From positions 1 through 64,000 of the IMG/VR virus record IMGVR_UViG_3300017917_001123: DNA of 64,000 nt; one strand, given 5' to 3'. Each line of letters begins with the position of its first letter. The first letter of the stretch is position 1. A program made the position numbers and the translations under genes. A model generated the notes under the pieces. That model did no database searches, was not told where the DNA came from, and saw only the letters and a list, made by a program, of their open reading frames with translations. Positions 1 to 52,422 of this stretch are shown here, one piece after another.

Positions 1-212
1 AATCTCAGTGTACACCTGGGAAATGCACAGTCAATGGGTCCTCTGTCTAGCTAGCACGGCCAATACTGTTGATGTCAGGAGGTTATGGGTCATGCCTGTG
101 ACTTCCGTAACGAAAGTAGAATAAGCTGTGGCCACAGCCTCTATATAAGTTGACACGTTAAAAGCAAACGGCAATAGGGTTATTGTTGTCCATAACGAAA
201 CGATACAACTAA
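1..212 (+). ncRNA. ORF-free structured RNA upstream of tRNA-Gly (5' end probably cut by window edge)
   Basis: Hairpins with G-U pairs: GGAGGTTATGGGT/GCCTGTGACTTCC, GCTGTGGCCACAGC, ACGGCAATA/TATTGTTGT; no credible ORF. Confidence 0.5.
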
Positions 213-220
213 AAGAATAT

Positions 221-294
221 GCGGGGTTCGTATAGTGGTAATACCTCAGCCTTCCAAGCTGATGCGGAGAGTTCGATTCTCTTACCCCGCTCCA
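221..294 (+). tRNA. tRNA-Gly (TCC)
   Basis: Cloverleaf; anticodon arm TCAGC-CT-TCC-AA-GCTGA; T loop TTCGATT; encoded CCA. Confidence 0.96.
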
Positions 295-384
295 GAGCAT
301 TCTCGGGCAGGCTAGTCCTGTGGGAATCAAGGCCGGCCAGGGGGCGCGGCGCCAAGCACGAAAAAGGCCTTGGCCAACATGCTC
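295..384 (+). ncRNA. GC-rich ~90-nt structured RNA between tRNAs
   Basis: Terminal stem GAGCAT/ATGCTC, hairpin GCAGG/CCTGT, stem CAAGGCC/GGCCTTG. Confidence 0.55.
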
Positions 385-396
385 CCTACGATTTAT

Positions 397-473
397 TGGC
401 TAGTAGCTCAGTTGGTAGTAGCATTTGACTGTTAATCAAAGGGTCGCTGGTTCGAGCCCAGCCTAGCCAGCCA
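397..473 (+). tRNA. tRNA-Asn (GTT)
   Basis: Acceptor TGGCTAG/CTAGCCA; anticodon TTTGA-CT-GTT-AA-TCAAA; T loop TTCGAGC; CCA. Confidence 0.96.
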
Positions 474-505
474 ATTTCAACAATTTTTTAAGTGGGTAGA
501 TAAAT

Positions 506-964
506 ATGAGTATGCTAAAGTTTATCACAGATATTACTGATCCACTGTTGAAATTCATTAAGGATGATCCAGTGCGTCCTGAAATTCCTGTAGACTTTAG
601 AGTTAGCCCTAACCGCTTTGTTAGCGGCCTAATCGAAGGTGAAGATCCGCAAGCTATGGTATGTGTTAGCTTGTGCGACAATGTCCCAAGTTCAGTAACA
701 GAGCTTGCTCAAGAAGCAATGGCTCCTACTACTGCTATTTTTTACACTATCTGGAGTTATGCTCCTGGCGCAGGCCGCGAGCTTCTAGAAGAAACTGTAA
801 AAGAAATCCAGGCAAAGTTTCCTAACGTAACTCGTTTTGTTACACTCAGTCCTAAAACTGAAATGGCACGCCGCTTTCATTTGAAGAACGGTGCTGTTGT
901 TTTCCGTGAAAATGACGAAAGTGTGAACTACGAATACGAAGTATTAAAGACTGACGCCGCTTAA
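506..964 (+). CDS. GNAT-fold protein resembling malonyl-CoA decarboxylase C-terminal domain
   Basis: TAIFYTIWS...GAGRELL...FVTLSP resembles MCD motifs; TAAATA directly before ATG. Confidence 0.55.
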   Translation: MSMLKFITDITDPLLKFIKDDPVRPEIPVDFRVSPNRFVSGLIEGEDPQAMVCVSLCDNVPSSVTELAQEAMAPTTAIFYTIWSYAPGAGRELLEETVKEIQAKFPNVTRFVTLSPKTEMARRFHLKNGAVVFRENDESVNYEYEVLKTDAA

Positions 965-1582
965 ACTTTCCTTGTGCCCAATAAATCCACGTAGCATTAC
1001 GTTAAAACTCAGTGAGACTCGATTGTTTTCACTCTTGTTTTCACGGACTTCGTGACTCATAGGACTTAGCCACATCATAAGTTCCGAAGGGCCAGGATTA
1101 ACAAATACGGAGTTACGACTAATCATACCCATCGGGTGTTGCTTAGAATCGTCGGTGTTAGGAACAAATTGGAACTCGTAGGGATTATGAAAAACAATCG
1201 GGCTCTTCTCTGTTCCAAAAGGATAGTAGGTGCCCGATATGATTGAGTTTCGATGACTATGAATATGGTGGATCATTCCGGGAGGAGTTACATTGATCCA
1301 ACTTTGTAGCAACTCGCATTCTACATCAACATAGCAAAGAACTTCTTTAGCATAGTAATTGATATTTTCAAGTAACTGCTTTTTAAGATCTGCTAGTTCA
1401 GGACGTTCTAGAATTTCAATAGAGTTATGAATCAAGTTACCTTGGTTTGTTCTCAGTGGTTCTGTTTCAACAATTTTTAAGATAGCCTGATTAGACTGGT
1501 CGGTGTTATCTAGTTTGTGGCGGAATAATGGCCAAGCAAACAACGGAAAAATTCCAATATCTTGTGTATTCATAGTAGACAT
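944..1582 (-). CDS. 2OG-Fe(II) oxygenase-like protein
   Basis: SWIN..HxH..S.ISG.YY, later H and R.SLSFN motifs. Confidence 0.8.
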   Translation of the reverse strand: MSTMNTQDIGIFPLFAWPLFRHKLDNTDQSNQAILKIVETEPLRTNQGNLIHNSIEILERPELADLKKQLLENINYYAKEVLCYVDVECELLQSWINVTPPGMIHHIHSHRNSIISGTYYPFGTEKSPIVFHNPYEFQFVPNTDDSKQHPMGMISRNSVFVNPGPSELMMWLSPMSHEVRENKSENNRVSLSFNVMLRGFIGHKESLSGVSL

Positions 1583-1626
1583 ATTTAAGTATGTATGTTA
1601 TACTAGATAAAAAATTAGGAGAGCAG

Positions 1627-2511
1627 ATGATTATTGTAACAGGCGCAGGCGGTTTTATTGGTAGTGTCATGGTTGGTTATCTCAACAGCATTGGCATTAC
1701 TGATATTATTGCCGTTGACGATATGCCACATCCGGAACAATATAAGAACTTAGTTGGAAAGAAGTTTCAACTAATTTCTACAAGCGAAATGGAATCGTTG
1801 CTGTCGTACCAACCTGGAAAGATCCAAGGAGTAATCCATCTGGGAGCCAACAGTAATACATTAGCTAATGATTGGGCCAGTGTGTATAAGACTAATGTTC
1901 TAAGTACTCGACAGTGGGCAAACTTGGCAAGACGTGACCATATTCCTTTTGTGTTTGCAAGTTCTGCGGCTATCTACGGAAATGGAAACGGGCCTCTGAA
2001 TCAGTATGCGTTTAGTAAACAAGTAAGCGAAAGCGAACTAGATTGGGGTGTTGTAAATCTACGCTTCTTCAACGTATATGGTCCTAACGAATATCATAAA
2101 GGTCGAATGGCAAGTACTATCTATAACTGGCATAGCCAAATATTAGAAACAGGTAGTATTAAGATCTTTAAAGACAGTGACCAATACTATAGAGATTTTA
2201 TCTACGTTGAAGATGTGTGTCGTGCTTGCTGGCATTTCATTGAAAACTTCCAGCCCGGTACATACGATTTAGGCACAGGACGAAGTGAAAGTTTTGAGCG
2301 TGTTGCTCGTGAGTTGGTAAAACACTATGACGAAGAAGTCTACTTTGACTATATTCCAATGCCGGGAGATTTAGCCAAACAGTATCAAACAGATACAAAA
2401 GCAGACATAAAAGCATTGACAAAAGCAGGCTTTGACACTACAATATGTAGAACAGTTAGCGAAGGAATAGAAGATTACGTTCCCTTCCTAAAAGAAGGAC
2501 GGCGTCTTTGA
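1627..2511 (+). CDS. gmhD: ADP-L-glycero-D-manno-heptose 6-epimerase-like NAD-dependent epimerase
   Basis: MIIVTGAGGFIGS, ASSAAIYG, YAFSK, LRFFNVYGPNEYHKGRMAS; AGGAG RBS before ATG 1627. Confidence 0.88.
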   Translation: MIIVTGAGGFIGSVMVGYLNSIGITDIIAVDDMPHPEQYKNLVGKKFQLISTSEMESLLSYQPGKIQGVIHLGANSNTLANDWASVYKTNVLSTRQWANLARRDHIPFVFASSAAIYGNGNGPLNQYAFSKQVSESELDWGVVNLRFFNVYGPNEYHKGRMASTIYNWHSQILETGSIKIFKDSDQYYRDFIYVEDVCRACWHFIENFQPGTYDLGTGRSESFERVARELVKHYDEEVYFDYIPMPGDLAKQYQTDTKADIKALTKAGFDTTICRTVSEGIEDYVPFLKEGRRL

Positions 2512-2716
2512 ACAACCCGGGATCCCATACCCGTTAGGAAATGGGGGTGTAGGCGGCTACCAAAATCCGCCGGGTACGCTAGGACTCGACCTTCATTCCC
2601 TGTTGGGGGAGCGTGAAAACAGCCTAGGGTGAGGAACACTACCTTTCCAGAAGAATAAATGTGTGGACGGAGTAACTGCCCAGTCTAGGGCTTCTGTGGT
2701 GGAAGTAGCTAGACAC
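2512..2716 (+). ncRNA. Structured RNA module A (multi-hairpin, possible kissing loop)
   Basis: ACCCGG/CCGGGT, CTAGG/CCTAG, GTCTAG/CTAGAC stems; loop CACTA complementary to loop TGGTG. Confidence 0.55.
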
Positions 2717-2717
2717 T

Positions 2718-2824
2718 TTTAACGAGCAGATTGACGAGATTTTAACGCCACGGCAAGGGCAACATTATCAAGTCGGTTTGCCGACCGAGGGGCTCTATAA
2801 TTTCCCTTCAGTCTGCTCATTAAA
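2718..2824 (+). ncRNA. Structured RNA module B (~105-nt closed rod)
   Basis: GAGCAGATTGA(2724-34)/TCAGTCTGCTC(2808-18), internal GTCGG-TTTG-CCGAC. Confidence 0.6.
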
Positions 2825-2940
2825 GGTCTTTGAAGTTTGACTACACTGGAGAACGCGAGTTAGGTACTAAGTCGACTAACTACCGAAAGCGCCAGGAAGA
2901 TACGGAGTCAGACAGTTTGGTTCGAGTCCAACTAAGACCC
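2825..2940 (+). ncRNA. tRNA-mimic RNA (acceptor stem + T arm, no D arm, large insert)
   Basis: GGTCTT/AAGACC termini; TTGG-TTCGAGT-CCAA T arm; GTTTGACT/AGTCAGAC helix. Confidence 0.65.
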
Positions 2941-2948
2941 TCGATTTT

Positions 2949-2972
2949 GAAAACTTGTTTCGGCAAGTTTTC
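2949..2972 (+). other. 10-bp UUCG tetraloop hairpin separating RNA modules
   Basis: GAAAACTTGT-TTCG-GCAAGTTTTC. Confidence 0.75.
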
Positions 2973-3214
2973 CGGTAGGGTAGCGGAGATGAGGAATAGC
3001 ACACAAGTAATCGTCTTGAAAACGAATACTTGACTAAATGGCTTGATTAGCCTCCGTAACTCAGTGCTCCGGGACTATTAGCATAATAGCGTGTTCATTG
3101 TTCCCCGGCAATATTGAGTTCTCTGTTTGTTGTAGGTTGTAAGCAAAAGTTTAATCGCTGGAGCACTTGTATCTTGCATTTTGTCCAGCTATTCGCTTGC
3201 TGTCTATCTTACCG
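2973..3214 (+). ncRNA. Structured RNA module D (~240 nt, ends paired)
   Basis: CGGTAGGGTAG/CTATCTTACCG and GAATAGC/GCTATTC closing stems followed by TTTTT. Confidence 0.6.
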
Positions 3215-3273
3215 TTTTTATTTGAAATATAGGCAAAAGACTGTATAATTGTTTTTGAAAAGGAAAAGGCAAA

Positions 3274-3843
3274 ATGAAAGTAACTCTCCGCAAAGCATCC
3301 GCTCTCCAGAACGCAATCCAGGAAGCAATCCGCAACATTGAAGTTAAGCTGGCAATTCAGCTTAACGAATTCGAAGACCCTGCTGTGGTCCTCGACAAAG
3401 CAACCTCAGAGGCTGTCATCAACGACCAACGTCGTGCTAGCTTGACTGCTTGCTTGTACGACATCCGTAGTTTGGTCGGAACTGCCAATGCCGCAAGTGG
3501 CATTAACGACCGCTTGGCAAAGGCCGCTTACATCGATAAGCGTTTGGGACAATTGGCCGGAATGGTCAAGGACGAAGTTCTCCGTGAGAACGTTTCCGTC
3601 ATCCAAGGCAAGCTAGAAAAGCTTCGTACCGCAGAGCCAAAGACTCGCATCTACGGATACGGCGACACAGTAGCTTCCGGCGTTCTTGTTGCCGAGCATG
3701 TTGCCAAGTATAAGGCAGATGTGCTTGAACTTAAGAAGGCCAAGCAAAAGCTCAACGACGAGATTCTTGAGCTTAACGTTCGGACAGAAATCGATCTCCC
3801 AACAGAGGTTGAAATGGTCCTGAACCAAGAAGGCCTAGTGTAA
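3274..3843 (+). CDS. Hypothetical alpha-helical/coiled-coil protein
   Basis: 189-aa ORF, AAGG RBS, TATAAT at 3244. Confidence 0.8.
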   Translation: MKVTLRKASALQNAIQEAIRNIEVKLAIQLNEFEDPAVVLDKATSEAVINDQRRASLTACLYDIRSLVGTANAASGINDRLAKAAYIDKRLGQLAGMVKDEVLRENVSVIQGKLEKLRTAEPKTRIYGYGDTVASGVLVAEHVAKYKADVLELKKAKQKLNDEILELNVRTEIDLPTEVEMVLNQEGLV

Positions 3844-3857
3844 AAACTAGGGCATTT

Positions 3858-3891
3858 AAATACAAGGGAGCATCAGGCTCCCTTTATTTTT
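3858..3891 (+). terminator. Intrinsic terminator-like hairpin
   Basis: AAGGGAGC-ATCAG-GCTCCCTT + T-rich tail. Confidence 0.6.
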
Positions 3892-4488
3892 ATGTTAGAC
3901 AAAATATACGTTATCGACGATGTAATATCCAAAGGTTATCAAGACATGCTAGAGCATGAACTTCTTAACCAAAATGCTCCTTGGCATTTCCAGCGTGACA
4001 TTGCTTTAGATGTCAACGATCCAAAAGCTCAAAAGAATATTAACGGAATGACTCCGGGCTTTAGCCATATCTTTTTTGATGTTGATAGCGGAGGTATTCG
4101 TAGTCCACTGTACTACCTAACTCTGCCTCTGATGTTTGAAGCGTTTGGAAAAATTGGTGTTACTCCTAAAATGATTGTACAAGGACGCAGTTTTATGCAT
4201 GTTCCTTTAGCAAACAAAAAAGAGTACGATAACATCCACGTAGACTACGGGCGAGATCATTTAGTATGCCTGTACTATGTAAACGACACAGACGGTGACA
4301 CTTTTATATTTGACAAGACATTCCGAGATGTCCGCCCGGACGCAGACTTTAGTAAAGTTCAGTGGAATGTTAAACAACGTATTAGTCCTAAGAAGGGCCG
4401 TGTTGTTTTATTCAATGGTAATCAATACCATTCAAGTTCTGGTCCAACTAAAGACATACGTTGTATTATTAACTACGATGTGTTATGA
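3892..4488 (+). CDS. 2OG-Fe(II) oxygenase
   Basis: HVD...LYYVNDTDGDT...PKKGRVVLF.G..YHSS...R.IIN. Confidence 0.85.
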   Translation: MLDKIYVIDDVISKGYQDMLEHELLNQNAPWHFQRDIALDVNDPKAQKNINGMTPGFSHIFFDVDSGGIRSPLYYLTLPLMFEAFGKIGVTPKMIVQGRSFMHVPLANKKEYDNIHVDYGRDHLVCLYYVNDTDGDTFIFDKTFRDVRPDADFSKVQWNVKQRISPKKGRVVLFNGNQYHSSSGPTKDIRCIINYDVL

Positions 4489-4658
4489 CAGAACAGAAAA
4501 AATCTAAAAACCCTTTTATCAATGCCGCATTGGCCGCAAAGGCCGCCGCAAGTGCTGGAGTGCCAAATTCTAGGACAGCACCGGTACAGCAGGCAAAATT
4601 TAAGAATCAAGTAAGCGGAAATAAGCCAGCCCAGAGATCAGCTGGCCGCGGACGTTAA
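4485..4658 (+). CDS. Small basic protein (57 aa, ends AGRGR)
   Basis: ATG overlaps upstream stop; hand-translated MTEQKKSKNPFINAALAAK... Confidence 0.6.
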   Translation: MTEQKKSKNPFINAALAAKAAASAGVPNSRTAPVQQAKFKNQVSGNKPAQRSAGRGR

Positions 4659-4659
4659 T

Positions 4660-4733
4660 GCTCCTGTAGTATAAAGGCAGTACACTTCCTTGGTAAGGAT
4701 GAGACGCTGGATCGTTACCAGCCTGGAGCACCA
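4660..4733 (+). tRNA. tRNA-Thr (GGT)
   Basis: Acceptor GCTCCTG/CTGGAGC, anticodon loop TT-GGT-AA, atypical T loop ATCGTTA, ACCA. Confidence 0.88.
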
Positions 4734-5354
4734 TTATAGCTTTTTAATAGCGATTATAATATCGTCTTCTCTACCTTCAGCAATCCGCTTGCCGTAATAG
4801 GTATCGATCTCAAATTTCTCACCAAGCCCGTGTAAATGATTTTCTAAATGCGGAATGAAGTTCTCGGCTGTTTGAGTATTCACTACGTCTTCAATAAAGT
4901 AGACGCCACCCCTGGCTAAACGTGGCCAGTAGTTTTGAAAGGTCTGCCATTGGCTATTTGCCCTATGGTCGCCATCGTCAATAATGAAGTCCATTGTTTC
5001 TTCGCCAAACTGTGCTGCCAATGCTGGATCAAAAGCACTACAATTCCAATATAAACTAATTCGCTGGTCTTGCTCAATTTCCTCTTGGAAAGGTCTTCTC
5101 ACGGCGTAACCTCCAGCAATATCAAAACTGTAGTAATCAAAATCAGTAAAGTACTTGCTCCAAAGATATGCGCTACCGCCAATGCTAATTCCAATTTCTA
5201 ACATACGAATTTCTTCTGTACGCTTTGGTTCGAAATATTTTTCATAGAATGGCAAATAGCTGTGTCCAGAATCTGCGCTCTTGTCGGTAAAATCTAAACT
5301 GGTTTCACCGTATTGTGCTTTAAGTTCTTCGTTGATTTCGTGTAATGTCTTCAT
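4734..5354 (-). CDS. Class I SAM-dependent methyltransferase
   Basis: LEIGISIGGS, DFIIDDGDH, GGVYFIED; start moved to ATG 5354 (TAAATA upstream; longer ORF overlaps a tRNA). Confidence 0.85.
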   Translation of the reverse strand: MKTLHEINEELKAQYGETSLDFTDKSADSGHSYLPFYEKYFEPKRTEEIRMLEIGISIGGSAYLWSKYFTDFDYYSFDIAGGYAVRRPFQEEIEQDQRISLYWNCSAFDPALAAQFGEETMDFIIDDGDHRANSQWQTFQNYWPRLARGGVYFIEDVVNTQTAENFIPHLENHLHGLGEKFEIDTYYGKRIAEGREDDIIIAIKKL

Positions 5355-5381
5355 GCGAATATTTACTGGAGAGTCTAATAC

Positions 5382-5410
5382 TTGATCTTTTTCTTGAGTT
5401 TTCGTATAAT
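5382..5410 (+). promoter_or_regulatory. sigma70-type promoter for aberrant tRNA
   Basis: TTGATC-17-TATAAT, 7 nt before tRNA. Confidence 0.65.
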
Positions 5411-5417
5411 TAACTAT

Positions 5418-5518
5418 GCGGCTGTGAGCAAATAGGCAAAGCTCTCCACCCTTTGGGTCGAGGTCGGACACTGACTTAGTCAACGTCTTTGGAGGTTCAA
5501 GCCCTCCCAGCCGTACCA
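5418..5518 (+). tRNA. Non-canonical type II (Leu-like body) tRNA, collapsed TTT anticodon loop
   Basis: GCGGCTG/CAGCCGT-A-CCA; Leu-like D loop; T arm GGAGG-TTCAAGC-CCTCC; loop CC-TTT-GG; ~30-nt variable arm. Confidence 0.75.
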
Positions 5519-5561
5519 AATTCTTGATTTATAGATTTTTATATCTGTAAATATCCGAGAC

Positions 5562-5637
5562 GCCCTAGTAGCTCAGTTGGTAGAGCAACTGATTTGTAAT
5601 CAGTAGGTCCGCGGTTCGAGTCCGTGCTGGGGCACCA
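5562..5637 (+). tRNA. tRNA-Thr (TGT)
   Basis: Canonical cloverleaf, ACTGA-TT-TGT-AA-TCAGT, ACCA. Confidence 0.96.
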
Positions 5638-5651
5638 AATTACGAGGTTAC

Positions 5652-6224
5652 ATGTTTAATTCTATTGAACAGGTTCGAGCCCATGTCGAACATCTAAAAA
5701 TAGCACCACCGTGGGAAATTAATGAACACCTAGCAACACTAGCAAGACTAGCCGGCGAATGCGAAACAATCTGCGAGTTTGGAGTAGCAACTGGTACTAG
5801 CACATGGGCATTTATGTCTACAGAACCTAAGTGGATGCGAAGCTATGATATTGCTCAATACCCAGAACTTCAGCTACTGATCGATACCGCAAAGAATCTA
5901 AACTGGGATTGGTCACTAACAATTCAAGATACTACGGACCCCGACTTTTATATTCCAGAATGTGACTTACTTTTTATTGATGCTATGCACAATGCCGACG
6001 CAGTTGGTAAAGAGCTTAAAAACGCACCGCGGGTTAAAAAGTACATTGTCTTCCATGATACTGAAAAGTACGGCGAACACGGCGGCGACGAAATGGCCGA
6101 AGTTCGTGAGCACATTCCTGGTATTATGGTAGCCATTCGTGCGTTCTTAGCAGAAAACACAAACTGGCGAATTAAAGAACAATACCAAAACAATCACGGT
6201 TTACTAGTAATTGAAAGATGCTAA
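5652..6224 (+). CDS. Class I SAM-dependent methyltransferase
   Basis: EFGVATGTST, DLLFIDAMH, YIVFHD. Confidence 0.82.
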   Translation: MFNSIEQVRAHVEHLKIAPPWEINEHLATLARLAGECETICEFGVATGTSTWAFMSTEPKWMRSYDIAQYPELQLLIDTAKNLNWDWSLTIQDTTDPDFYIPECDLLFIDAMHNADAVGKELKNAPRVKKYIVFHDTEKYGEHGGDEMAEVREHIPGIMVAIRAFLAENTNWRIKEQYQNNHGLLVIERC

Positions 6225-7171: not shown

Positions 7172-9082
7172 ATGTCAAAAATTATAGGTATTGACCTAGG
7201 TACAACAAACTCTTGCGTGGCTATCATCGATGGCCCAAATGCTAAAGTTATCGAAAACTCAGAAGGCGCAAGAACAACCCCTTCAATTATTGCTTACACT
7301 AACGAAGAAGTGCTCGTTGGCGCAACTGCCAAACGACAAGCAGTAACAAATCCAAAAAATACATTGTACGCCGTTAAGCGTCTTATTGGACGTAAGTTCA
7401 GTGAGAAAGAAGTACAAAAAGACATCGACTTGATGCCTTACAAAATTATTCAAGCAGACAACGGTGATGCTTGGGTAGAAGCAAACGGTCAAAAACTTGC
7501 TCCGCCACAAATTAGTGCTGAGGTTCTTCGCAAGATGAAAAAGACCGCAGAGGATTTTTTAGGTGAAGAAGTTACAAAAGCAGTTATTACAGTTCCAGCA
7601 TACTTTAACGACTCACAAAGACAGGCTACAAAGGACGCTGGTAAGATCGCCGGCTTGGAAGTACTCCGTATTATTAACGAGCCTACTGCGGCAGCTCTTG
7701 CTTATGGTGTTGATAAAGCTGATGGTAAAGACAGGAAAGTTGCTGTTTACGATCTTGGTGGTGGTACATTCGACATTAGCATCATTGAAATCGCGAATGT
7801 CGACGGTGATAAGCAGATTGAAGTTCTAAGCACCAACGGTGACACGTTCTTAGGCGGTGAAGACTTTGACCAACGCATCATGGACTATCTAGTAGCAGAG
7901 TTCAAAAAGGACAACGGCGTTGACCTAAAGAGTGATGTTCTTGCTCTTCAGCGTCTAAAAGAAGCCGCAGAAAAGGCAAAGATCGAATTGTCTAGCTCTG
8001 CTAGCACAGATGTTAACTTGCCTTACATTACTGCCGACGCAAGTGGTCCTAAGCACATGAACGTTAAGATCACTCGTGCTAAGTTTGAAAGTTTAGTTGA
8101 GGATCTAGTAGAACGCAGTCTAGAGCCATGCCGCATTGCACTAAAAGACGCAGGTCTAAGTGCCAGCGACATCGACGAAGTTATCCTAGTCGGTGGCCAG
8201 ACTCGTATGCCTAAGGTACAAGAAGCAGTTGAGAAGTTGTTTGGCAAGGCACCACGTAAGGATGTTAACCCAGACGAAGCAGTTGCTGTCGGCGCCGCAG
8301 TTCAAGGGCAAGTGTTAGGCGGTGGACGCACTGACGTTCTATTGCTTGACGTTACTCCATTGAGTCTTGGTATCGAGACGCAAGGTGGTGTTATGACTAA
8401 GATGATTAAGAAGAATACTACTATTCCGACTAAGCATAGTCAAACATACAGTACTGCCGAAGACAATCAGCCAGCAGTTACAATTAAAGTCTATCAAGGT
8501 GAACGTGACCTAGTTGCTTATAATAAACTATTGGGCGAGTTTAACTTAGAAGGCATTGATCCTGCTCCACGCGGTATGCCTCAAATTGAAGTTACATTCG
8601 ATATCGACGCAAACGGCATTCTTGACGTCCATGCTAAGGATAAGAAAACTGGCAAGGAAAAGAAAATTACTATCAAAGCAAGTTCTGGTCTAAGTGACGC
8701 AGAAATTGAAAAGATGGTACAGGAAGCCGAAGCCAATGCCGAAGCAGATAAAGAGGCAGTTGCCCTAATTAATCTTCGAAACGAAACCGACGTTCTAATC
8801 CACATGACTGAAAAGTTAATGAAGGAATTGGGCGAAAGCGGTGTTTCGCTAGACGAAGAAGATCAGGCAAAAGAGTCAATCGAAAAAGCCAAAGAAGCTC
8901 TAAAAGGCAACAACAAGTCAACTATTGAAAAAGCTCAAGACGAAGTTAAGGAATGGCACAAGAAGTTCCTACAAAAGTCTCAAGAGCAAAATGAGGCCAA
9001 CAAGCAAGAGTCCGAAATTGACAAGGGACAAAAGCCGGGCTACGAAAATGTAGTTGATGCCGAGTTTACGGAGAAATCTTGA
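7172..9082 (+). CDS. dnaK: Hsp70 chaperone DnaK
   Basis: [26 protein letters not shown]-terminal VDAEF; AAGGAG RBS. Confidence 0.97.
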
Positions 9083-24352: not shown

Positions 24353-24599
24353 CGAACGCTATCGTGCTATTAAATGGGCAGAACAGCTTTGTCGAGATCT
24401 CATGGATCCTAGCAAAACTCCTAGAGTGCCGAAAACTATTCGGCAACGGGCTTACAGCGTTCTGCGGCATTTTCCCGAAGAATACTATTTGGCAATGTTA
24501 GCAGAAGCAAGGCCAGATATTATAGAACGAAGAGGTAAACCATTTGATCCTCTGTACAAAATGGTTAAAGATTACGAATTTAAAAAGGAAGAAAAATGA
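24339..24599 (+). CDS. Hypothetical phage protein
   Basis: [10 protein letters not shown]...LRHFP. Confidence 0.75.
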
Positions 24600-25216
24600 A
24601 CCTAGTACCAATGGTAGTTGAAAAGACCAGTCAAGGCGAACGTGCTTATGACATTTACAGCCGCTTACTCAAAGAGCGCATTGTTTTCCTAAACGGCCCT
24701 GTAGATGATCACAGCGCAAACTTGATCGTAGCACAGATGCTGTTCTTGGAAAGCGAAGATCCTACTAAGGACATTAACTTCTACATTAATAGCCCAGGTG
24801 GACTGGTTACTGCTGGTTTGAGCATTTATGACGTTATGCAGTTCGTTAAATGCGATGTAGCAACCTATGTTATGGGTCAAGCGTGTTCAATGGGTTCGTT
24901 CCTGGCACAGGCAGGTGCCAAAGGCAAGCGTTATGTGTTGCCCGAATCACGCACAATGATTCACCGTGTTAGCTCAGGTACTCCAGGTACCAAAGGTAGT
25001 GTTCACGTTCAAGAACTACAATTTGAAGACGCTAAACGCACTTTTGAAGAAAGCCAGCGCATTAATAAGCGTCTAACTGAACTGTATGTGCGCCACAATA
25101 CCGCAGGTAAGACCTACGAAGAAATGTTCGAAGCGATGAAATTTGATACATTTTTGGGCTCCGAAGAAGCGGTTGCTTGGGGTCTAGCAGACCACGTTAT
25201 CAGCAAGCACGAATAA
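24596..25216 (+). CDS. clpP: ATP-dependent Clp protease proteolytic subunit
   Basis: [19 protein letters not shown], catalytic SMG and MIH. Confidence 0.95.
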
Positions 25217-30482: not shown

Positions 30483-33400
30483 ATGGCAACTACTTCATCA
30501 AATAGACTAATAATTAACCTTGGTTCGCAAGCAAACGATGGTACAGGTGACGCAATTAGAGCGGCATTTGACAAGGTTAATCAAAACTTTGAGACAATTT
30601 TCAACGTAGCAGGTATCGGTTCGGGCCTGTTATTCACTAAACTAGCAGATGCTCCAAGATTGCTGTCGGCCAACAAAATGTTGGTTACAGACGCAACAGG
30701 TTTAACTGTAACACAAATGTCTATAGTTGGTGCCCAGGGCATCCAAGTAACTGTAGACCAAGGCCAAAAGCGTGTTTTAATTGACGCAACAGTAACAAAC
30801 TTAGTTAACGATCCTAACCCAGTTCTTTCTAATAACTTGAGCGGCGGTGTTGTTAATCGCGGTATAAATTTTGCTGATCCAGTTGATGATCAAGACATCG
30901 CAACAAAGAAATGGATCTACGATAACTTCCTAAATCGCGATTCTAACTACCAATACATTTCAAGTACAAACCCAATCACAGGTGCCAATGTTACATCTAC
31001 GATCGTAGAAGGTAGCACACTACGCCACAATATCCAAATTCAGCCTACAGGTGTAAACACAGCATCTAACGCAGGAAAGGTTATTACACTATTTGACAGC
31101 GACGGTGTTAGCCTAAAAGACTTTGATGTGTCAGTAGGTGCTTGGAGACCAAGCCACGTAACTCGTAAAGATTATGTTGATACAAAGATTTCTTTACAGG
31201 GTATCGACACCATTGATCCAGAGACAGGACAAATTAATCCTAGCTTTGGTCAGATGACCGGACCTCTATACCTATCGAGAGATCCGCGAGAACAAGACCC
31301 AGGCAACGTAGCCGCAACAAAGGCCTATGTCGACTCTGTAGGTTTTCCAAGCCGTCAAAACTTTTATGTAAGTTTGAATGGTAGTGATGCTCGTTATGAT
31401 ATTCCAGCATACAAGCGAGGACGTTCTTTTGCTTGGGCTTTCCGTACAGTTAACAAAGCCGCTCAGGCCGCATTACAGTATTCCAAAGCATCTGAAATTA
31501 AGCTAGGTGTTTACCAGCGTGTTATTACTTCTAACAACTACAAAACTCCTGTTGAGATTTTAAGTATTGGTCCAGGAACAATTTCTGGAACATATAAAAT
31601 TAGTGTAACCTACACAGGCGGAAACGGTACTGATCCTTTCATTGAAAGAAGTATTCGTCCAGGACAGTTCTTACAAGGTATTAGTACAAACGCAATTGGT
31701 GAAATTCTAAACGTTGCTTTAGAGCCAGCAAGTAACGTCGAAGAATACTATGAAGTCCGTTTAGTCGACTACGCAGATACATTCGAATCACCTATTACTC
31801 CTAGCGACCTAGCAGGTGAAGTAACATTTACTCTGTTTGAGCCAAACTTAATTGAGATTCCAGATTTCTGGATCGGTTATAAGTTTGTAGTCGATAGTGT
31901 AGCAGGCGGCGGTGTCGGTGAAATTATTGGATTCGATTTATACTACCACCCTAACGGTAACATTTATAACCAAGTTATTGTTAGAATGAGCGAGCCATTA
32001 AGTAGCACAAACATTATTAGTGGTGACAACTGGCACGTTTATTCTGGTTACTTCAGCGTTGGCGAATCTTTACGCTACGGTCAAAAGTATAACAAACTAG
32101 AAATTTCTATTCTTGTTGAGTCTGGCGAATTTAACGAACAGCTACCGATTAGAATTGGCGACAACATTTCTGTTAAAGGTGATGAATTCCGTCGTACAAT
32201 GATCAAGCCAGCCTACGTTAGAGGTACAGCACGTTGCGGTATTTCTACAAGTAAGTGGGCTAACATTTGGTTCCGCAGAGACACGCAGATTGACGGTATT
32301 ATTGTTACACAATTAAACACATCAACTGATTATGCGGCTCTAACTACAGCAACTCCAGATGGTGTAACAAACGATGCTTCAACAGAAGTAATCACATTTA
32401 CACTAGGCTCAGGTACTGCTGATCCAGACTGGATTAAGAAAGTCTTTATTGGAGCAGGTGGCCGAGGTGAAATTAAAGCAGTTCTAGGTAATACATTCAC
32501 GGTTGACATTGCTGAAAACGACAACGGTATTAGAAGAATCGATAGTGCGGCACCTATTGCCGCAGGTGATTGGAGCATTTATGAACCATACAACTTTGGT
32601 TACCATTACCTAAGAGATGCTAGCCGTCCATTAAACTTCTTAGCAGGTCCTAACCCAGGTGGTTACAACTTCGCTTCAAAGATTCTATTAGACAACATCG
32701 AGTTTATTAAGTCCGAAGTAATTGGTTGGATCGACCAAACATACAGTGGCGGATTTACATATAACGTAGCTGACTTCCAACGCAACACTGGATTGTTAGT
32801 CGATGCGGTTGCTCAAGATTTATTATTCAGCGGAACAAGCCAAGCAACATTTGCGGGCTTGTTAAATTGGAATCGAAACGGCGTACAATCTGCCTTTGCT
32901 GGCGGTGTAACTATTGCTTCAAATGCTGTAACATACATTAAAGAATTAGCACAGAAAGTTGTCCAGAAAGATTTAACAGGTACAAGATACCAAAGTGCTG
33001 TAACTCAAACAACATCTGGCATTGGAGCGGCAACTCCAGCAGAAGCATCTACAATCGCTGCCGACATAGATGTTATTCTAAATATTTTCTTGAACGGAAC
33101 AGCTGATGTTCAAGATACAATTATTCCAAACGGATTAACTAAGAGTTCAGATCCTGATGTACAGAATGCTCACGATTTGTTACAAGCAAACAAGCTCTAC
33201 ATCCAAGCAGAAGCTATTGCCTTTGTTGAAGCAACCAAAGCTAATGGATTTACATACGATCAAAACAAATACACTCAAAATTTTGGATTTATTGTTGACG
33301 CAGTAAGTACAGACCTTCTATACGGTGGTAATAAACAATCTGTCCAACTTGGAACATATTACTGGAACTTTGATGGCAGTTCATCAGCAATTGCAAACGA

Positions 33401-36400
33401 ACTTTCACAAACAGTTGCGGCTTATAACTACATCAAATCAATTCTGCCAGATATCATCCAAGGTACCGCTCTAGCAGTAACACAACAAAATACTGTTCCT
33501 CAAGTTATTATTGGCTACGGTCCAGGAGATGCTTCTGCTGTAACACAAGCACAGGCTAAGATTGATGTTGTTACTAACATTACTTCTAACGGTCCAAGTG
33601 TGGCTAGTGCTCAAAGCACATTACCGTTAACAAGAAGCACTGATCCAGATATTATCAACGGAGCAATTTTACTATCAGCAAACAGAACATTTATTATTGC
33701 TGAAACTATTGCGTTTGTTAATAATTCTTTCTTAACAGGATTTGTTTACGATAGAGAAACTTGCCGTAGAGACATTGGCTTAATTGTCGATGCGTTAGCA
33801 TTTGACTTAAAGAACGGTGATATTAACTCATCAATTAACGCGGCTGATAGCTATTACGCAGGCAATGTTCAACAAGTTCTTCAAAACGAACTAGCACAAA
33901 CTGTGGGCGCAATCGGTTATATTAATACTCTAGCGCAACAACTATTTGATCAAACTCCTATTACAACACTATACGGTTTTGTTCCACAGAGAATAGACAC
34001 TATTATTGGTGAAGTAGGGGCAAAGGCTCAAGTTACCAACCTAACTACAGCAATGCAGGGTATCTTAAACAACGATCCTGCGTTCAACCCACCTAAGTAT
34101 AACGACGAAATGGACATCTTCTTAATGAACGATGCGACCATGTTACGTTACTTAGGCGGTAACGGTCACGGTGGCTTTATGAAGGTACTTGACCCAGAAG
34201 GACAAATTAAATCTAAGTCACCATATACTCAGACATGTTCATCATTCTCACAGAGTATTGGCCGACACAGATTTGCTGGTGGTTTCTTTGTTGACGGATT
34301 CTGCGGTAACTTGCCATTAGTTACAGCAGCCGGTACAGCAAGTCCAGATACAAACGGTAACTTAATTTACATTCCAGTAACTGGCGTGAGACGTTTACCT
34401 GTATTCCCAACTTACTTTATTCACGAAGGTGTTAAGTACGAAGCGGACTACATGCAGAATTATGACCCAGTTAACCAAACTGGTACTCTTGTTCTAAACC
34501 CAAACAACCCAGGTGGTATTAGTTCCGTAAGTGTTAACAGCGGAAATACACAAAACGAATTTAAACCGAACGTTGCTCAACTACCAGTAACATTTAGTTC
34601 TCCAGGCACACCTGGTGGTGCTACTGCTCGTGGTTATGCTGTAACTAACGCATCTGGTAATATACAAACCATTGTTATCACATTCCCAGGTGTAGGATAT
34701 GTAACAGAACCAAGTGTTAGCCTAGGCGGTGCTACGTTTAACTTTATTATCGACGGCGGTGCTATTACATCAATGTCTGTCAACTACGGCGGTATTGGTT
34801 ATACAACAGGTACACAAATTAATATTGCAAGTCCAGGCGGTGCCGGGTTAACTGCTACCGCAACAATTACAGGTGTTGACGGACTTGGCGCAATTACTTC
34901 TATCAATTTAGTATCAGGCGGTACAGGATACACTAGTGTTCCAACTGTTACATTTGGTCGTCAAGTATTCAGCGCAAACTTAGTAAACGGCTTTATTGGC
35001 AATTTACCATCAAAACTAGAACTAATTACTGCTGGTAACCGTTCTATGTTAGCCAACGACTTTACACAGTTAAACGATTTAGGCTATGGTATTTTTGCTA
35101 CCAACGGTGGATTCATCGAAAACGTTTCGATGTTCACTTACTACTGCTATACCTCATACTACGCACTGAACGGTGCTATTCTAAGAACTATTACAGGTTC
35201 TACAGCTTACGGTACTTACGGTCTAGTCGCAGAAGGTTCAAACCCATTAGAGGTACCAACTGCGGTTACAATGTCAGACGAATTAACACAGATTGCTACT
35301 GTTTATAATCAGGCTCCGTACATTAACGCCAAAGGCGGTGCTGACATTTATGTAACACTAGACAGCACCTACGGTTACCCTCCATACTCTAATGGGGAAA
35401 TTGAGATCAATCACAACGGTATTAGAAAGACATATTCTCTAAGATCTGCTAAACAGATTTCTGGAAACTTATATGCTCTATCAATTGATTCAACCGGTGG
35501 TGGATTATACGCTATTGTTCCGAACGGCGAGCCGTTGACAATTCGTGTTAAGTTTATTTGGAGACTAGGCGGCTTAAATGCTAAGACATTAACTCGTCCA
35601 AGTACAGTTTTAACACTGGCGGAAAACTCAATTTACAACTACCGTATTCTAGAGTACACAGACTTAGGTAGTGACTATGCGTTAGCTGAAGCTGATCAGT
35701 CATATGACTACATTCAACTAACTCCATACAGTCAGAGTAACCTATATCGCCAAGGTGTTGGTCGCCCAACTATCAGCGTTGCTGGTAGTGGTTACACTTC
35801 GACAACTACACAGTATGGTGTAACATTTGACAGTCCTCCATCAAAGACTGCGGTAGTTAACGGTGTTCAGGGAACTGTTGATAGTCCAGTAACACAGTTA
35901 TCGATCGCAAGTTCTAGCGGAGCAATTCACCCTGGTATGAGAATTACTGGTGCTGGCGCTATTGCTAACCAGTACGTAACTTGGGTGAGCTTGGATAGAT
36001 CTATTATTCAAACAAGCCAGGCACAGGTTTGGTCGACTGCAAGTGCTACACTAACATTTGTTGGTACTACCGCAACTGGTTATGCCAAGGCCAACGGAAC
36101 AAGCATTACTGGAATCACAATTACTGATCCCGGTACTGGTTACGACACAGCGCCAGGTGTTACAATCGTACCCGGAAGTGGTGTACAAGCTCAGGCAACT
36201 GTTTCCTTAAGCGGTACAAGCGGAACTAACATTGTTAAGGTTCTTCCTTTAAATGGACAAGATACTGCTCGTATTAACATTGGACTAACAAGCCCAACTC
36301 CATACTATTACGTATTTGGTTACGAAGGTCAGACTTATAAGATTACAGATTATAAGACTCCTGTTCAAACAGGTCAAGCATGGGGCGAAATTCAAATTTC

Positions 36401-43205: not shown

Positions 43206-43586
43206 ATGGCTGTCACAGGCAAAATTACACCACTTAAAGACAAAGTAATCATTTCCGATATGAACTTTGGCGAGGACTTTACACAGTCCGGAATCGTTTT
43301 ACCAAGCGACAACGCAAAAGGTAGCGGAGTACGCCCACGCTGGGCAAGAGTTTGGGCAGTAGGTCCAGAACAGATAGATGTCAAAGTAGGTGAATGGGTA
43401 CTAATGGAACACGGACGTTGGAGCCGTGCTATTAAGTACACTGAAGAAGACGGTACTGAAAGAGAAATCTTCTTAGCAGACATAAAAGGAATGATGTTAA
43501 CTGCGGATGAAAAGCCTAGCGATGTGATGAGGAACATTACACACGGAGCAGGTTCAAACGTGAACTTTAACATCCCAGGAGCATAA
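43206..43586 (+). CDS. GroES-like co-chaperonin
   Basis: PLKDKVII, T.SGIVLP, V.AVGP, VKVGE.V. Confidence 0.85.
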   Translation: MAVTGKITPLKDKVIISDMNFGEDFTQSGIVLPSDNAKGSGVRPRWARVWAVGPEQIDVKVGEWVLMEHGRWSRAIKYTEEDGTEREIFLADIKGMMLTADEKPSDVMRNITHGAGSNVNFNIPGA

Positions 43587-51105: not shown

Positions 51106-51912
51106 ATGGATTACTATGAAACATTAGGCGTGCCTAAAGGGGCGTCAGAAGAAGAAATTAAAAAAGCCTATCGCAAATTGGCTATGAAGCATCATCCCGA
51201 CCGAGGTGGGGATGCTTCTAAATTTAAAGAAATTGAAGAAGCGTACAGAATACTAGGCGACCCAAATGCTAGAGCAGAGTACGATCAACCAAAACAATAC
51301 TCGTCTAGAGCAGACGGATTCGGAGTCCCTCCAGGCTTTGAAGGATTCTTCCATCACTTTGGAGGAAACTTTAGCGACTTGTTTCGTCCACAACGACCCC
51401 GAAATAGAGATTTAAATTTCCACACTCGTATTACACTAGAAGATGCGTTCTACGGTAAAGAGCTTGTGGTTAATTTCTTTAAAGCAAACGGTCAAGAAAA
51501 AATCCTTAATGTAAAAATTCCACAGGGCATTCAAAACGGAATGACTCTGCGCTTACAAGGTGTAGGCGATGATAGTTTACCGCAAGCACAGGTTGGAGAT
51601 GTACTAATTACGGTCGAAGTAGTACAAAATAGAGAATTCAAACGTCAAGGGGATGATTTAATCAAAGAGGTTGAAATTAACTGTATCGATGCTATGCTTG
51701 GTAAAGAGATACTAATTACAACTATTGATGGAAAAACACTAACAGGTCGTGTTCCTCCGGGATCGCAACCAGATAGTATCCTAAACATTCCCGGACAAGG
51801 AATGCCCAACATGAATAACCCAAACAGTCGTGGTAGATTGTTGCTACACATAAGAATGACTGTTCCGCAGTTAACTGAAGATCAAAAAGAACAACTTAAG
51901 AAGATATTTTAA
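51106..51912 (+). CDS. dnaJ: DnaJ-class co-chaperone (no zinc finger)
   Basis: [13 protein letters not shown]-terminal GDLI..I..AMLG domain. Confidence 0.9.
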
Positions 51913-52422
51913 ATGCTAGATATAGTTAAATTCCCAAATCCAATTTTAAGACAGAAGATGCCGGACTTCGACTTTTCAAATCCAGTTATGGACCCAAAAG
52001 AACTGGAGAAAGAAATGATCGAAACAATGTTAAAGAACTACGGAATGGGTCTGGCCGCCAATCAAGTAGGAATAGCTACACGGGTGTTTACTATGGGACA
52101 CCCAACAATGCCAGAAAATGCCAAAGCGTTTTTTAATCCAGAAATTGTAGCAAACACAGAATCTGTCAAAGATTTGGAAGAAGGATGCTTGAGTTTTCCC
52201 GGAATTTATGTTAATATTAAACGTCCTACAGCCATAAAGGCTCGTTGGCAAAATAGTTCCGGTGAATGGGAGGAGGGAGAGTTTGAAGGATACGAATGTA
52301 AATGCTTCTTACATGAATTCGATCATTTGGAAGGAATTGTTTTTTCAGATCGAGTCAGTCAGTTAAAATGGGCTATGGCAATTAAAAAACTTAAATCTAA
52401 TAAGAGGAAACACAATGCTTGA
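51913..52422 (+). CDS. def: Peptide deformylase
   Basis: GMGLAANQVG, EGCLS, HEFDH. Confidence 0.95.
   Translation: MLDIVKFPNPILRQKMPDFDFSNPVMDPKELEKEMIETMLKNYGMGLAANQVGIATRVFTMGHPTMPENAKAFFNPEIVANTESVKDLEEGCLSFPGIYVNIKRPTAIKARWQNSSGEWEEGEFEGYECKCFLHEFDHLEGIVFSDRVSQLKWAMAIKKLKSNKRKHNA

Follow-up and report, generated by a model that had tools for sequence, protein, structure and literature searches.

Non-tRNA structured RNAs are known residents of phage tRNA clusters. In phage T4, the small stable RNAs rnaC (species 1, 139 nt) and rnaD (species 2, 119 nt), whose functions have remained unknown for decades, directly abut tRNA-Arg at the end of the tRNA cluster, with spacers of 1–6 nt. rnaC folds with paired 5' and 3' ends, a canonical T-arm (GGUUCGAAUCC) and long hairpins in place of the D and anticodon arms. 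The much larger, ornate GOLLD (RF02032) and ROOL RNAs (about 580–800 nt), also of unknown function and recently shown to form RNA cages, are found in phages or prophages, often near tRNA islands or inside them (bioRxiv 10.1101/2024.12.08.627333). HDV-like theta ribozymes lie adjacent to viral tRNAs (PMC10879173 and its preprint), and Y RNAs have been described in phages (PMC4201824). Here, we analyzed a window of 64,000 nt, positions 1 to 64,000 of the 331-kb IMG/VR virus record IMGVR_UViG_3300017917_001123. The original prediction was that about 700 nt of this window (2512–3214) lack a credible ORF and resolve into four abutting structured RNA modules with a UUCG hairpin between the last two. 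This observation holds: the region contains four separate, conserved, folded RNA genes (A–D), which match no curated RNA family and recur, in shuffled order, among the tRNA clusters of a group of very large uncultured phages.

The longest ORF within 2512–3273 is 67 aa with a TTG start. All six frames carry 9–17 stops of all three kinds and the longest open run is 69 codons, so that no single stop reassignment would rescue coding. The module borders are set by their independent occurrence in other phage contigs, and profile searches with nhmmer recovered the predicted modules almost base for base: A at 2516–2716, B at 2719–2823, C at 2827–2937 and D at 2982–3201. The envelopes of the covariance models are 2504–2728 for A (with flanks), 2824–2942 for C and 2971–3216 for D. 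No paralogues of the modules were found inside the 64-kb window, and a megablast search of positions 1–6000 against 50,697 phage records returned only tRNA-Thr matches. The Logan contig SRR5831666_287111 carries window positions from about 2664 on. The predicted pairing of 5' and 3' ends is correct for B (a 17-bp closing stem), C (an 8-bp acceptor-like stem) and D (a 20-bp bulged closing stem). The predicted abundance of G-U pairs is also borne out, as several pairs are G-U in nearly every sequence, for example pairs 23:261, 114:167 and 116:165 of D and pair 242:259 of A, the latter in 105 of 105 sequences, which fixes the + strand as the RNA strand.

To test whether pairing and covariation exceed chance, a point on which the original prediction could have failed, we compared each alignment with 500 shuffles, none of which reached the observed value for any module. 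For D, 98.3% of cells are paired compared to 80.8% in shuffled controls, with a covariation of 0.478 against 0.186; for A, the values are 94.6% against 79.4% and 0.463 against 0.183. In C, 98.1% of cells are paired against 87.5%, and in B 97.3% against 90.8%, although the latter comparison rests on only 5 sequences. Controls in which the helices were slid pair only 29–51% of cells. On thermodynamic grounds alone the picture is less uniform: the window copy of B has an MFE z-score of −4.5, whereas A and C on their own show no excess over shuffles (z of +0.3 and −0.2, respectively).

Module A (2516–2716, + strand) is an RNA of about 200 nt with four tandem H-type pseudoknots, e.g. PK1 with stems 2518–2521/2530–2533 and 2524–2528/2541–2545, followed by two 3' hairpins with a near-invariant core (GGAC...GUCUAGGGC...GCUAGACAC). 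The covariance model gave 105 hits, and 24 of 33 pairs show compensatory changes. When cognate and non-cognate duplexes were compared, all 12 helices, including the pseudoknot stems, favored the cognate partners, with 12–46 distinct duplexes each. The 3' motif occurs in more than 120 viral contigs. Among 135 unique copies, A is preceded within 40 nt by the gene for a 189-aa protein in 54 cases and by a tRNA in 49 cases; in those 54 copies it starts 4–9 nt after the stop codon of the gene, and in the window and in relative L004 (L numbers denote the sequences compared) it starts after the stop of an epimerase gene. A promoter-like site (TTGACA-17-TACAAT, 11/12) was identified by a consensus scan at 2416–2444 (+), about 70 nt before A and inside the 3' end of the epimerase gene. 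Although TTGACA is kept in L002 and L004, the −10 box differs there and the site lies in coding sequence.

Module B (2718–2824, +) is a three-way-junction RNA of about 105 nt, with 37 pairs, 8 of them compensatory. B rests on few sequences, with 6 members found by nhmmer, and 10 of the 136 distinct 160-nt stretches downstream of A fall in the B cluster. Module C (2825–2940, +) is tRNA-like. It has the 8-bp acceptor-like stem and a T-arm with a UUCGAnU loop and a one-base bulge, both with compensatory changes, but about 80 nt of long irregular arm replace the D and anticodon arms, and no CCA is encoded. It has 15 members, with 13 of 27 pairs compensatory. After itself, the next-best hits of the C covariance model include genuine tRNAs, namely T4 tRNA-Thr at E = 0.04 and tRNA-Gly and tRNA-Thr of the window, whereas neither ARAGORN nor the Rfam tRNA model (RF00005) calls C a tRNA.

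Module D (2943–3221, +) is an RNA of about 270 nt with a GAUUUUG lead, a hairpin P0 with a UUCG loop (2949–2972), the long bulged closing stem P1 (about 2973–3000 with about 3185–3214), hairpins P2 and P3, nested helices P4/P5 and a closing U-run (3215–3223). The UUCG hairpin of the original prediction is P0 and therefore not a separate spacer, as it is present and covaries upstream of D in all 37 distinct upstream sequences inspected. P2 and P3 fold in 43 distinct sequences, with mean z-scores of −3.7 and −2.4, while a further helix, P6, is present in the main clade but could not be placed in the sub-clade of the window. The covariance model gave 50 hits, with 29 of 38 pairs compensatory, and the D pattern occurs in 102 viral contigs; A and D thus each occur in more than 100 IMG/VR contigs. 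Among 185,579 bacterial and archaeal genomes it gave 3 hits, all of which were rejected by the covariance model, have no tRNAs nearby and are chance matches. Within D, YUG triplets recur at exact 7-nt spacing between 3091 and 3183 in three clusters, at 3091 and 3098; at 3123, 3130 and 3137 (and 3144 in most relatives); and at 3174 and 3181. YUG is present in 43 of 43 distinct D sequences at 3098, 3123, 3130, 3137, 3174 and 3181 and in 36 of 43 at 3144, and NUG is present in 42 of 43 at 3091, suggesting a multivalent binding RNA.

The near-constant downstream partner of D is the gene at 3274–3843 (+), which encodes the 189-aa protein of unknown function. It lies downstream of D on the same strand in 86 of 93 evaluable unique D copies, at a distance of 33–91 or 242–303 nt, whereas seven copies lack it within 1.5 kb. 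We found 71 loci at 35–65% identity. No Pfam, PHROG or PDB-sequence family was identified, and the AlphaFold2 model (pLDDT 89.8) is all-helical, with no recognizable RNA-binding fold. Its structural relatives are only uncharacterized proteins of jumbo phages and giant viruses, and a Foldseek search of the PDB returned nothing at E ≤ 0.001, only helical bundles and BAR domains at E ≥ 0.05. A tblastn search found two distant hits in Brevundimonas jumbo phages with no D and no tRNAs nearby; the homologue in Brevundimonas phage Bambus has no room for D upstream and no tRNAs within the 5.6 kb examined. In about 30 of 37 relatives D has its own TATAAT/TTGACA promoter; otherwise it is placed directly after a tRNA or a C-like module. 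In the window, a promoter-like site (TTGAAA-16-TATAAT, 11/12) lies between D and the gene at 3222–3249 (+), and L051 and L005, in which D also lacks its own promoter, likewise have a TTGAC..TATAAT site here.

The original prediction also placed similar modules at 1–212 and 295–384. The former is a fifth conserved structured-RNA family, module E (1–212, +; homology over 5–212), with full-length homologues in L162, L222, L259 and L261. These show 28 more conserved bases upstream and compensatory changes such as CUCAG/CUGGG against GUCUG/CAGGC, indicating that the contig start cuts off about 28 nt or more of its 5' end. In contrast, the latter is unsupported, as the spacer 295–396 has no homologue, is unique in IMG/VR and has no fold signal (z = −0.9). 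The flanking genes are tRNA-Gly(UCC) at 221–294 (+) and tRNA-Asn(GUU) at 397–473 (+), both called by ARAGORN and scoring 57.5 and 62.5 bits, respectively, with the Rfam tRNA model.

Comparison with known families did not assign any of the four modules. Searches against Rfam 15 at gathering score and at E ≤ 10 over positions 1–6000 returned only four tRNAs outside the island, and searches of 12 relatives returned only tRNAs and, elsewhere, GOLLD. On smaller search spaces (306 and 241 nt), D of L024 alone gave no hit at E ≤ 10 and A of L062 alone gave only noise at 9–15 bits, including a 9-bit fragment match to RNase P RNA at its edge; there was no RNase P RNA hit (RF00010/RF00011) in the window. 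A–D give no GOLLD or ROOL score at all, while the GOLLD model (gathering score 150 bits, conserved 3' domain) scores 202–229 bits in the arrays of L024, L005 and L062, at places distinct from A and D; where both occur, the modules lie 1.7 kb or more from GOLLD, and they are much smaller (105–270 nt). ARAGORN finds no tmRNA or additional tRNA in the island but does call a permuted, two-piece tmRNA in L056. Module A, a run of H-type pseudoknots often followed by the tRNA-like C, recalls tmRNA and the plant-virus 3' tRNA-like structures with upstream pseudoknot domains, but there is no tag reading frame, C has U3:A70 rather than G3:U70, and A and C are separable units that often occur without each other. 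C shares with T4 rnaC both the layout and the architecture, but not detectable homology: with filters off and E ≤ 10, rnaC (L277:1909–2047, minus strand) is not among the hits of the C model, and nothing in the T4 tRNA region is homologous to D. Furthermore, T4 has two such RNAs, whereas this clade has many families, some of 200–270 nt with pseudoknots. Some of these RNAs may already be listed in a mass catalogue of 8,495 IMG/VR candidate structured RNAs (PMC10690425).

The original interpretation, a polycistronic ncRNA cassette processed like tRNAs and possibly an undescribed phage RNA system, is only partly supported. These are structured RNAs rather than coding sequence, they match no Rfam family, they covary strongly, and they sit in a phage tRNA region on the tRNA strand at tRNA-like spacing (0–8 nt), with the promoter-like site upstream of A and a terminator-like closing stem plus U-run at the end of D. 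However, they do not form one system or a fixed cassette, because A, B, C and D are independent families that appear in different combinations and orders in relatives. There, they lie inside arrays of up to 35 tRNAs per 12 kb (3,482 tRNAs in 351 sequences), and the usual order is tRNA, D, the 189-aa gene, A, then B or C or others, then tRNA-Met, of which the window is a rearranged case. Given its own promoter in most relatives and its position upstream of the 189-aa gene, D is a stand-alone RNA or a leader tied to that gene, not simply a tRNA-like cistron.

We consider it more likely than not that the island is a string of four separate genes for structured non-coding RNAs, all read from the + strand, which belong to the non-tRNA cargo of the very large tRNA arrays carried by a clade of uncultured, mostly large phages. 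The modules behave like tRNA genes in layout, with the same strand, short spacers and free reshuffling between genomes. In this view, the four would most likely be transcribed together, either from the promoter-like site at 2416–2444 or by read-through from the epimerase gene, and transcription would end at the closing stem and U-run of D. Host tRNA and stable-RNA processing enzymes would then cut the units apart, with C offering a putative RNase P/3'-end processing site immediately before D, just as a real tRNA would in some relatives. D would be functionally tied to the 189-aa gene, either as its long leader or as its RNA partner, and its seven YUG triplets, together with a UUG in the P3 loop of most copies, suggest that it binds several copies of one protein or a multimeric protein; its closing stem carries an invariant bulged motif. 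A is a compact four-pseudoknot RNA that always starts 4–9 nt after an ORF stop or a tRNA 3' end. The analysis itself establishes that the units exist, are conserved, fold as judged by covariation, lie on the + strand, are modular and confined to phages, and that D is linked to the gene, whereas co-transcription, processing, protein binding and any biological role are inferred from sequence alone.

An alternative that remains possible, though less likely, is that D and A are cis-acting untranslated regions rather than free RNAs. D would then be a long regulatory leader, possibly autoregulated by the 189-aa protein through the YUG repeats as in TRAP, HutP or T4 gp32-type control, and A a 3' structure that protects an upstream message or insulates it from downstream tRNA processing. 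In about half of the relatives D ends only 33–47 nt before the start codon, and with a promoter upstream of D and none in between, D must be part of that mRNA; the position of A directly after ORF stops points in the same direction. Conversely, in the window, L051 and L005 a strong promoter separates D from the gene and D follows a tRNA or tRNA-like module, 49 copies of A follow a tRNA, and the closing stem of D joins its own ends and is followed by a U-run, which is the shape of a self-contained RNA rather than of an expression platform. The resemblance to multivalent protein-binding RNAs (trp leader/TRAP, hut leader/HutP, CsrB-type sponges) lies in short invariant triplets at a fixed short spacing in single-stranded stretches and loops next to a conserved gene, but the triplet and the 7-nt spacing do not match the known sites of those systems, and the resemblance is a lead only. 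It is very unlikely that C is merely a decaying tRNA gene with an insertion and no function of its own, despite its tRNA-type acceptor and T arms and the weak hits of its model to real tRNAs. Its members span sub-clades in which the flanking 189-aa protein is only about 50% identical, yet the non-tRNA arm keeps invariant blocks (ACUACAC, GUCGAC, CAGGAAGAU) and compensatory changes, a related 34-member variant family keeps the same acceptor stem, and T4 rnaC, a stable RNA, shows the same design.

Very unlikely is the possibility that the modules are diverged or fragmented copies of GOLLD, tmRNA, RNase P RNA, Y RNA/YrlA or theta ribozymes, which is prompted by the GOLLD and tmRNA carried by the clade, the pseudoknots of A and its position right after tRNAs, but is opposed by the absence of family matches described above. 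For an HDV-like fold, which requires a nested double pseudoknot with P1, P2, P3/L3, P1.1 and P4 and cleavage at its own 5' end just downstream of a tRNA, only one base lies between the two strands of PK1 in A where P3/L3 would have to be, and no HDV-family Rfam hit appears. The closing stem of D (GGU, a 3-nt AGA bulge, UGAG, opposite CUUGACC) resembles the Ro-binding bulged helix of Y RNAs, the 3' strand resembling the vertebrate motif, and tRNA-like modules lie nearby. The GGUCCGA motif is quoted in PMC4201824; the 5' strand of D fits neither this nor GNCGAA, and the likeness is an unproven resemblance. Moreover, D is about 270 nt compared to 80–130 nt for Y RNAs, gives no Rfam Y_RNA or YrlA hit, neighbors a predicted helical protein rather than Ro, and no TROVE/Ro or RtcB gene was found in positions 1–57 kb of the window. 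Similarly improbable is that the modules are small mobile or recombining DNA elements (MITE-like, with terminal inverted repeats) or protein-binding DNA sites. The modules are reshuffled between genomes, many families (B, D and others downstream of A) begin and end with inverted repeats, and the YUG/TTG repeats could in principle be protein sites on DNA. Yet internal helices covary and not only the termini, the near-invariant G-U pairs would be A-C mismatches on the other strand, all copies share the orientation of the tRNAs, a 7-nt repeat does not fit the DNA helical repeat, and there are no target-site duplications and no transposase.

A more speculative reading, which we regard as unlikely, is that D and the 189-aa protein form a previously unknown phage ribonucleoprotein, in which a multimeric protein would read seven or more YUG triplets set 7 nt apart. 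As YUG is also the pair of glutamine anticodons and 7 nt is the size of an anticodon loop, a decoy or sponge for an anticodon-directed host factor is conceivable. A and the tRNA-like C family would then be translation- or tRNA-machinery mimics, and together they would form a new toolkit of phage tRNA-island RNAs alongside GOLLD and ROOL.

While enigmatic RNAs in phage tRNA islands were already known, this locus shows that one phage clade carries a whole repertoire of further conserved structured RNAs in the same niche, with at least five families in this window and several more in relatives, all absent from Rfam. Two of them offer experimental handles that GOLLD and ROOL lack, as D has a near-obligate protein-gene neighbor and a simple repeated motif that can be mutated, and C is a minimal tRNA mimic, by its predicted structure, amenable to tests with RNase P, the CCA-adding enzyme and synthetases. 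Understanding these RNAs could explain what phages gain from the non-tRNA part of their tRNA arrays, be it processing, translation takeover or counter-defence.

The 331,570-bp uncultured phage contig IMGVR_UViG_3300017917_001123, of which the first 64 kb were analyzed, has no close cultured relative, as megablast of positions 1-6000 returned only tRNA-Thr matches. The first 6 kb hold tRNA-Gly, tRNA-Asn, tRNA-Thr(GGU) and tRNA-Thr(UGU), together with a small MCD-like protein, a 2OG-Fe(II) oxygenase, an NAD-dependent epimerase (1627-2511), a 189-aa protein (3274-3843, + strand) and a further protein that weakly resembles a 2OG-Fe(II) oxygenase, below the Pfam cut-off. In addition, ARAGORN calls an odd 101-nt tRNA-Pro(GGG) at 5418-5518 (+ strand) that the Rfam tRNA model does not call. 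This element folds with a 7-bp acceptor stem, a canonical T-arm (GGAGG UUCAAGC CCUCC), a long extra arm and an encoded ACCA end, follows a promoter-like TTGATC-17-TATAAT site at 5382-5410 and overlaps the called start of the minus-strand methyltransferase gene (4734-5471); it may be another tRNA-like or type-II tRNA gene. Further along (7172-9082, 43206-43586, 51106-51912, 51913-52422, 52415-54691 and 24596-25216), the phage encodes its own chaperone and proteostasis set, comprising a DnaK-like HSP70, Cpn10, DnaJ, peptide deformylase, a ClpB-like AAA+ protein and ClpP, as well as a 2,788-aa protein with no Pfam family at 30483-38849.

The original prediction of an ORF-free island made of structured RNA modules holds. 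Between the epimerase stop (2511) and the start of the 189-aa gene (3274), the longest ORF is 67 aa with a TTG start, and each of the six frames carries 9-17 stops of all three kinds. Rfam 15 gave no match in this interval, either at gathering score or at E<=10. To ask whether the predicted modules are evolutionary units, we collected 151 loci through the two flanking proteins and later about 200 more through DNA patterns (related loci are designated here by L numbers). Blastn and iterated nhmmer recovered each of the four modules separately, in different contigs and combinations, with borders at 2516-2716 (module A), 2719-2823 (B), 2827-2937 (C) and 2982-3201 (D), within a few bases of the predicted 2512-2716, 2718-2824, 2825-2940 and 2973-3214. 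Nucleotide identity is 70-89%, while the flanking 189-aa protein is only about 50% identical, and the window holds a single copy of each module.

For module D, a covariance model found 50 copies in 67 sources. On that alignment, 98.3% of cells form standard pairs compared to 80.8% after shuffling, 29 of 38 pairs show changes on both sides, and the covariation score is 0.478 compared to 0.186, with 0 of 500 shuffles reaching the observed value; sliding the partners by 1-3 columns drops pairing to 33-45%. The core is a long closing stem (P1) with an almost invariant bulged segment (GGU, a 3-nt bulge, UGAG, opposite CUUGACC), inside which lie two hairpins (P2 and P3) and a nested P4/P5 pair. The UUCG hairpin (2949-2972), which had been placed as a separate element between the last two modules, is the first helix of D: each of the 37 distinct upstream sequences inspected has a covarying hairpin at that position, and most have a GUUUUG-type lead (GAUUUUG in the window) before it. 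In about 30 of those 37, a TATAAT box, often with TTGACA 17 nt upstream, sits just before the lead, indicating that D usually has its own promoter. In the window and in the related loci L002, L004 and L015 it follows a C-type module instead, and in L051, L005 and L047 it follows a tRNA. At its 3' end, D terminates in ACCG followed by a U-run in the window and several relatives. The D pattern occurs in 102 IMG/VR contigs, whereas in 185,579 species genomes it gave three hits, all rejected by the covariance model and none with tRNAs nearby.

Of 95 unique full-length D copies, 86 of the 93 evaluable ones have the 189-aa gene downstream on the same strand, at 33-91 nt or at 242-303 nt; in examples of the longer spacing (L037 and L062) an ATG-initiated reading frame begins shortly after D. 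D also carries YUG triplets at exact 7-nt spacing, which are invariant in 43/43 distinct sequences at window positions 3098, 3123, 3130, 3137, 3174 and 3181 and present in 36/43 at 3144, with NUG present in 42/43 at 3091; a further UUG sits in the P3 loop of most copies. YUG, as found at 3123-3139 and 3174-3183, is also the pair of glutamine anticodons, and the 7-nt spacing equals the size of an anticodon loop, but the other loop positions (U33, purine 37) are not kept, so this may be coincidence.

The 189-aa protein itself is real, as it is found at 71 loci with a conserved length. It has no Pfam or PHROG family, its AlphaFold2 model is confident (pLDDT 89.8) and all-helical, and PDB searches gave nothing informative. 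A search of BFVD identified confident structural relatives among uncharacterized proteins of Caulobacter phage CcrColossus, Vibrio phage Vp_R1, the Erwinia phage pEa_SNUABM_47 and two giant viruses (Catovirus and Yasminevirus). A distant homologue in Brevundimonas phage Bambus has only 62 nt upstream and no tRNA within the 5.6 kb examined; the link to D is therefore specific to this clade.

For module A, a second covariance model found 105 copies in 100 sources, with 94.6% of cells paired compared to 79.4% after shuffling, 24 of 33 pairs compensatory and a covariation score of 0.463 compared to 0.183 (0 of 500 shuffles). Reading the alignments suggested four successive H-type pseudoknots followed by two 3' hairpins. 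To test this without relying on alignment, we compared duplex formation between each sequence's own strand windows with that between strands from different sequences. On this test of our own, rather than on R-scape, all 12 helices favor the cognate partner, e.g. 6.4 bp compared to 4.8 bp for stem 2 of the first pseudoknot (PK1), with 39 distinct duplexes and never fewer than 5 bp, and 7.3 bp compared to 4.0 bp for the inner 3' hairpin. A begins 4-9 nt after an ORF stop or a tRNA 3' end; among 135 unique copies, the feature within 40 nt upstream is the 189-aa gene in 54 and a tRNA in 49, whereas in the window and in L004 it is the epimerase stop. The 3' motif of A is found in more than 120 viral contigs, which is a lower bound.

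Module B has few members, 6 by nhmmer and 10 distinct copies in a cluster downstream of A. It is a three-way junction closed by a 17-bp stem, with 8 of 37 pairs compensatory and 97.3% paired, and the window copy folds with z = -4.5. Module C has 15 members, plus a 34-member variant family with the same acceptor stem. It has an 8-bp acceptor-like stem, a T-arm with a UUCGAnU loop and a conserved one-base bulge, and about 80 nt of irregular arm where the D and anticodon arms should be; 13 of 27 pairs are compensatory and 98.1% are paired. A covariance model of C gives genuine tRNAs among its next-best hits after itself (T4 tRNA-Thr at E=0.04, and tRNA-Gly and tRNA-Thr of the window), so the tRNA resemblance is measurable, yet tRNA finders reject C.

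The related loci are enormous tRNA arrays, with up to 35 tRNAs in 12 kb and 3,482 tRNAs in 351 collected sequences, all on the strand of the modules. Of the 12 relatives searched, three carry GOLLD RNA at 202-229 bits (L024:3570-4027, L005:2123-2583 and L062:1418-1880), each with a tRNA-Asn embedded, in the same arrays as D and A but well away from them; the 64-kb window has none. One relative carries a permuted (two-piece) tmRNA (L056:7243-7688), whose tag ends in YALAA and which lies about 700 nt downstream of the homologue of the 189-aa gene. The usual order in relatives is tRNA(Thr/Asn), D, the 189-aa gene, A, then B, C or another module, and tRNA-Met, whereas the window has the epimerase, A, B, C, D, a promoter and the 189-aa gene. 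Clustering the 160 nt downstream of A gave many further families, each with paired ends, the largest clusters having 34, 15, 11 and 10 members. At least six such small module families, each with paired 5'/3' ends and A/U-rich spacers, follow A in different contigs (e.g. L002:5572-5727, L156 on the minus strand just below 8101, L036 from about 1782 and L006 from about 6783), and the largest, with 34 members, is the variant of C with the same acceptor stem.

Of the two additional modules proposed at 1-212 and 295-384, one is borne out. Positions 5-212 (+ strand) belong to a fifth conserved structured-RNA family, E, with four full-length homologues at L162:6452-6656 (+ strand), L222:8655-8859 (- strand), L259:7129-7331 (- strand) and L261:6353-6555 (+ strand). 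The contig begins inside E and truncates it, so the assembly probably broke within the tRNA array. By contrast, a module at 295-396 is unsupported: this G+C-rich 102-nt spacer between tRNA-Gly and tRNA-Asn has no homologue in any collected locus, its 23-mer is unique in IMG/VR, and its fold is no better than shuffles.

In line with the original prediction, which named GOLLD, ROOL, tmRNA, RNase P and Y RNA but could match the modules to none of them, there is no match to these RNAs, YrlA or any ribozyme family in Rfam, although prior listing of the modules in the IMG/VR catalogue of candidate RNAs (PMC10690425) remains possible. An HDV-like fold of A is rejected by inspection of PK1, which has only a single base where P3/L3 would have to be. 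The closing stem of D recalls the Ro-binding helix of Y RNAs (PMC4201824), a comparison that also draws on vertebrate Y RNA sequences, but the 5' strand does not fit, D is twice too long, and no TROVE or RtcB gene lies in the 57 kb examined. DNA-level elements are unlikely, because pairs that are G-U in almost every sequence would be A-C on the other strand and because internal helices covary. The reading of D as a leader and A as a 3' element, both acting in cis, remains a serious rival for those relatives in which D and the gene share a promoter. The nearest precedent in layout and, for C, in architecture is T4 rnaC/rnaD, which abut tRNA-Arg and of which rnaC has paired ends and a canonical T-arm, but there is no detectable homology. 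GOLLD and ROOL share the niche and the unknown function.

The interpretation of the island as a polycistronic cassette of non-coding RNAs processed like tRNAs is partly supported. The analysis establishes five independent families of + strand structured RNAs, found only in phage contigs and arranged like tRNA genes, although B rests on few sequences, and a tight link between D and its gene. Transcription, processing and protein binding, in contrast, are inferred from sequence alone. In this view, the island would be transcribed as one unit, either from 2416-2444, a TTGACA-17-TACAAT match whose conservation is ambiguous because it is coding, or by read-through, and transcription would end at the stem plus U-run of D. 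The transcript would then be cut at the short A/U-rich spacers and at the tRNA-like C by the stable-RNA processing enzymes, and D would bind several copies of one factor through its YUG heptads, for which the adjacent 189-aa protein is the obvious candidate.
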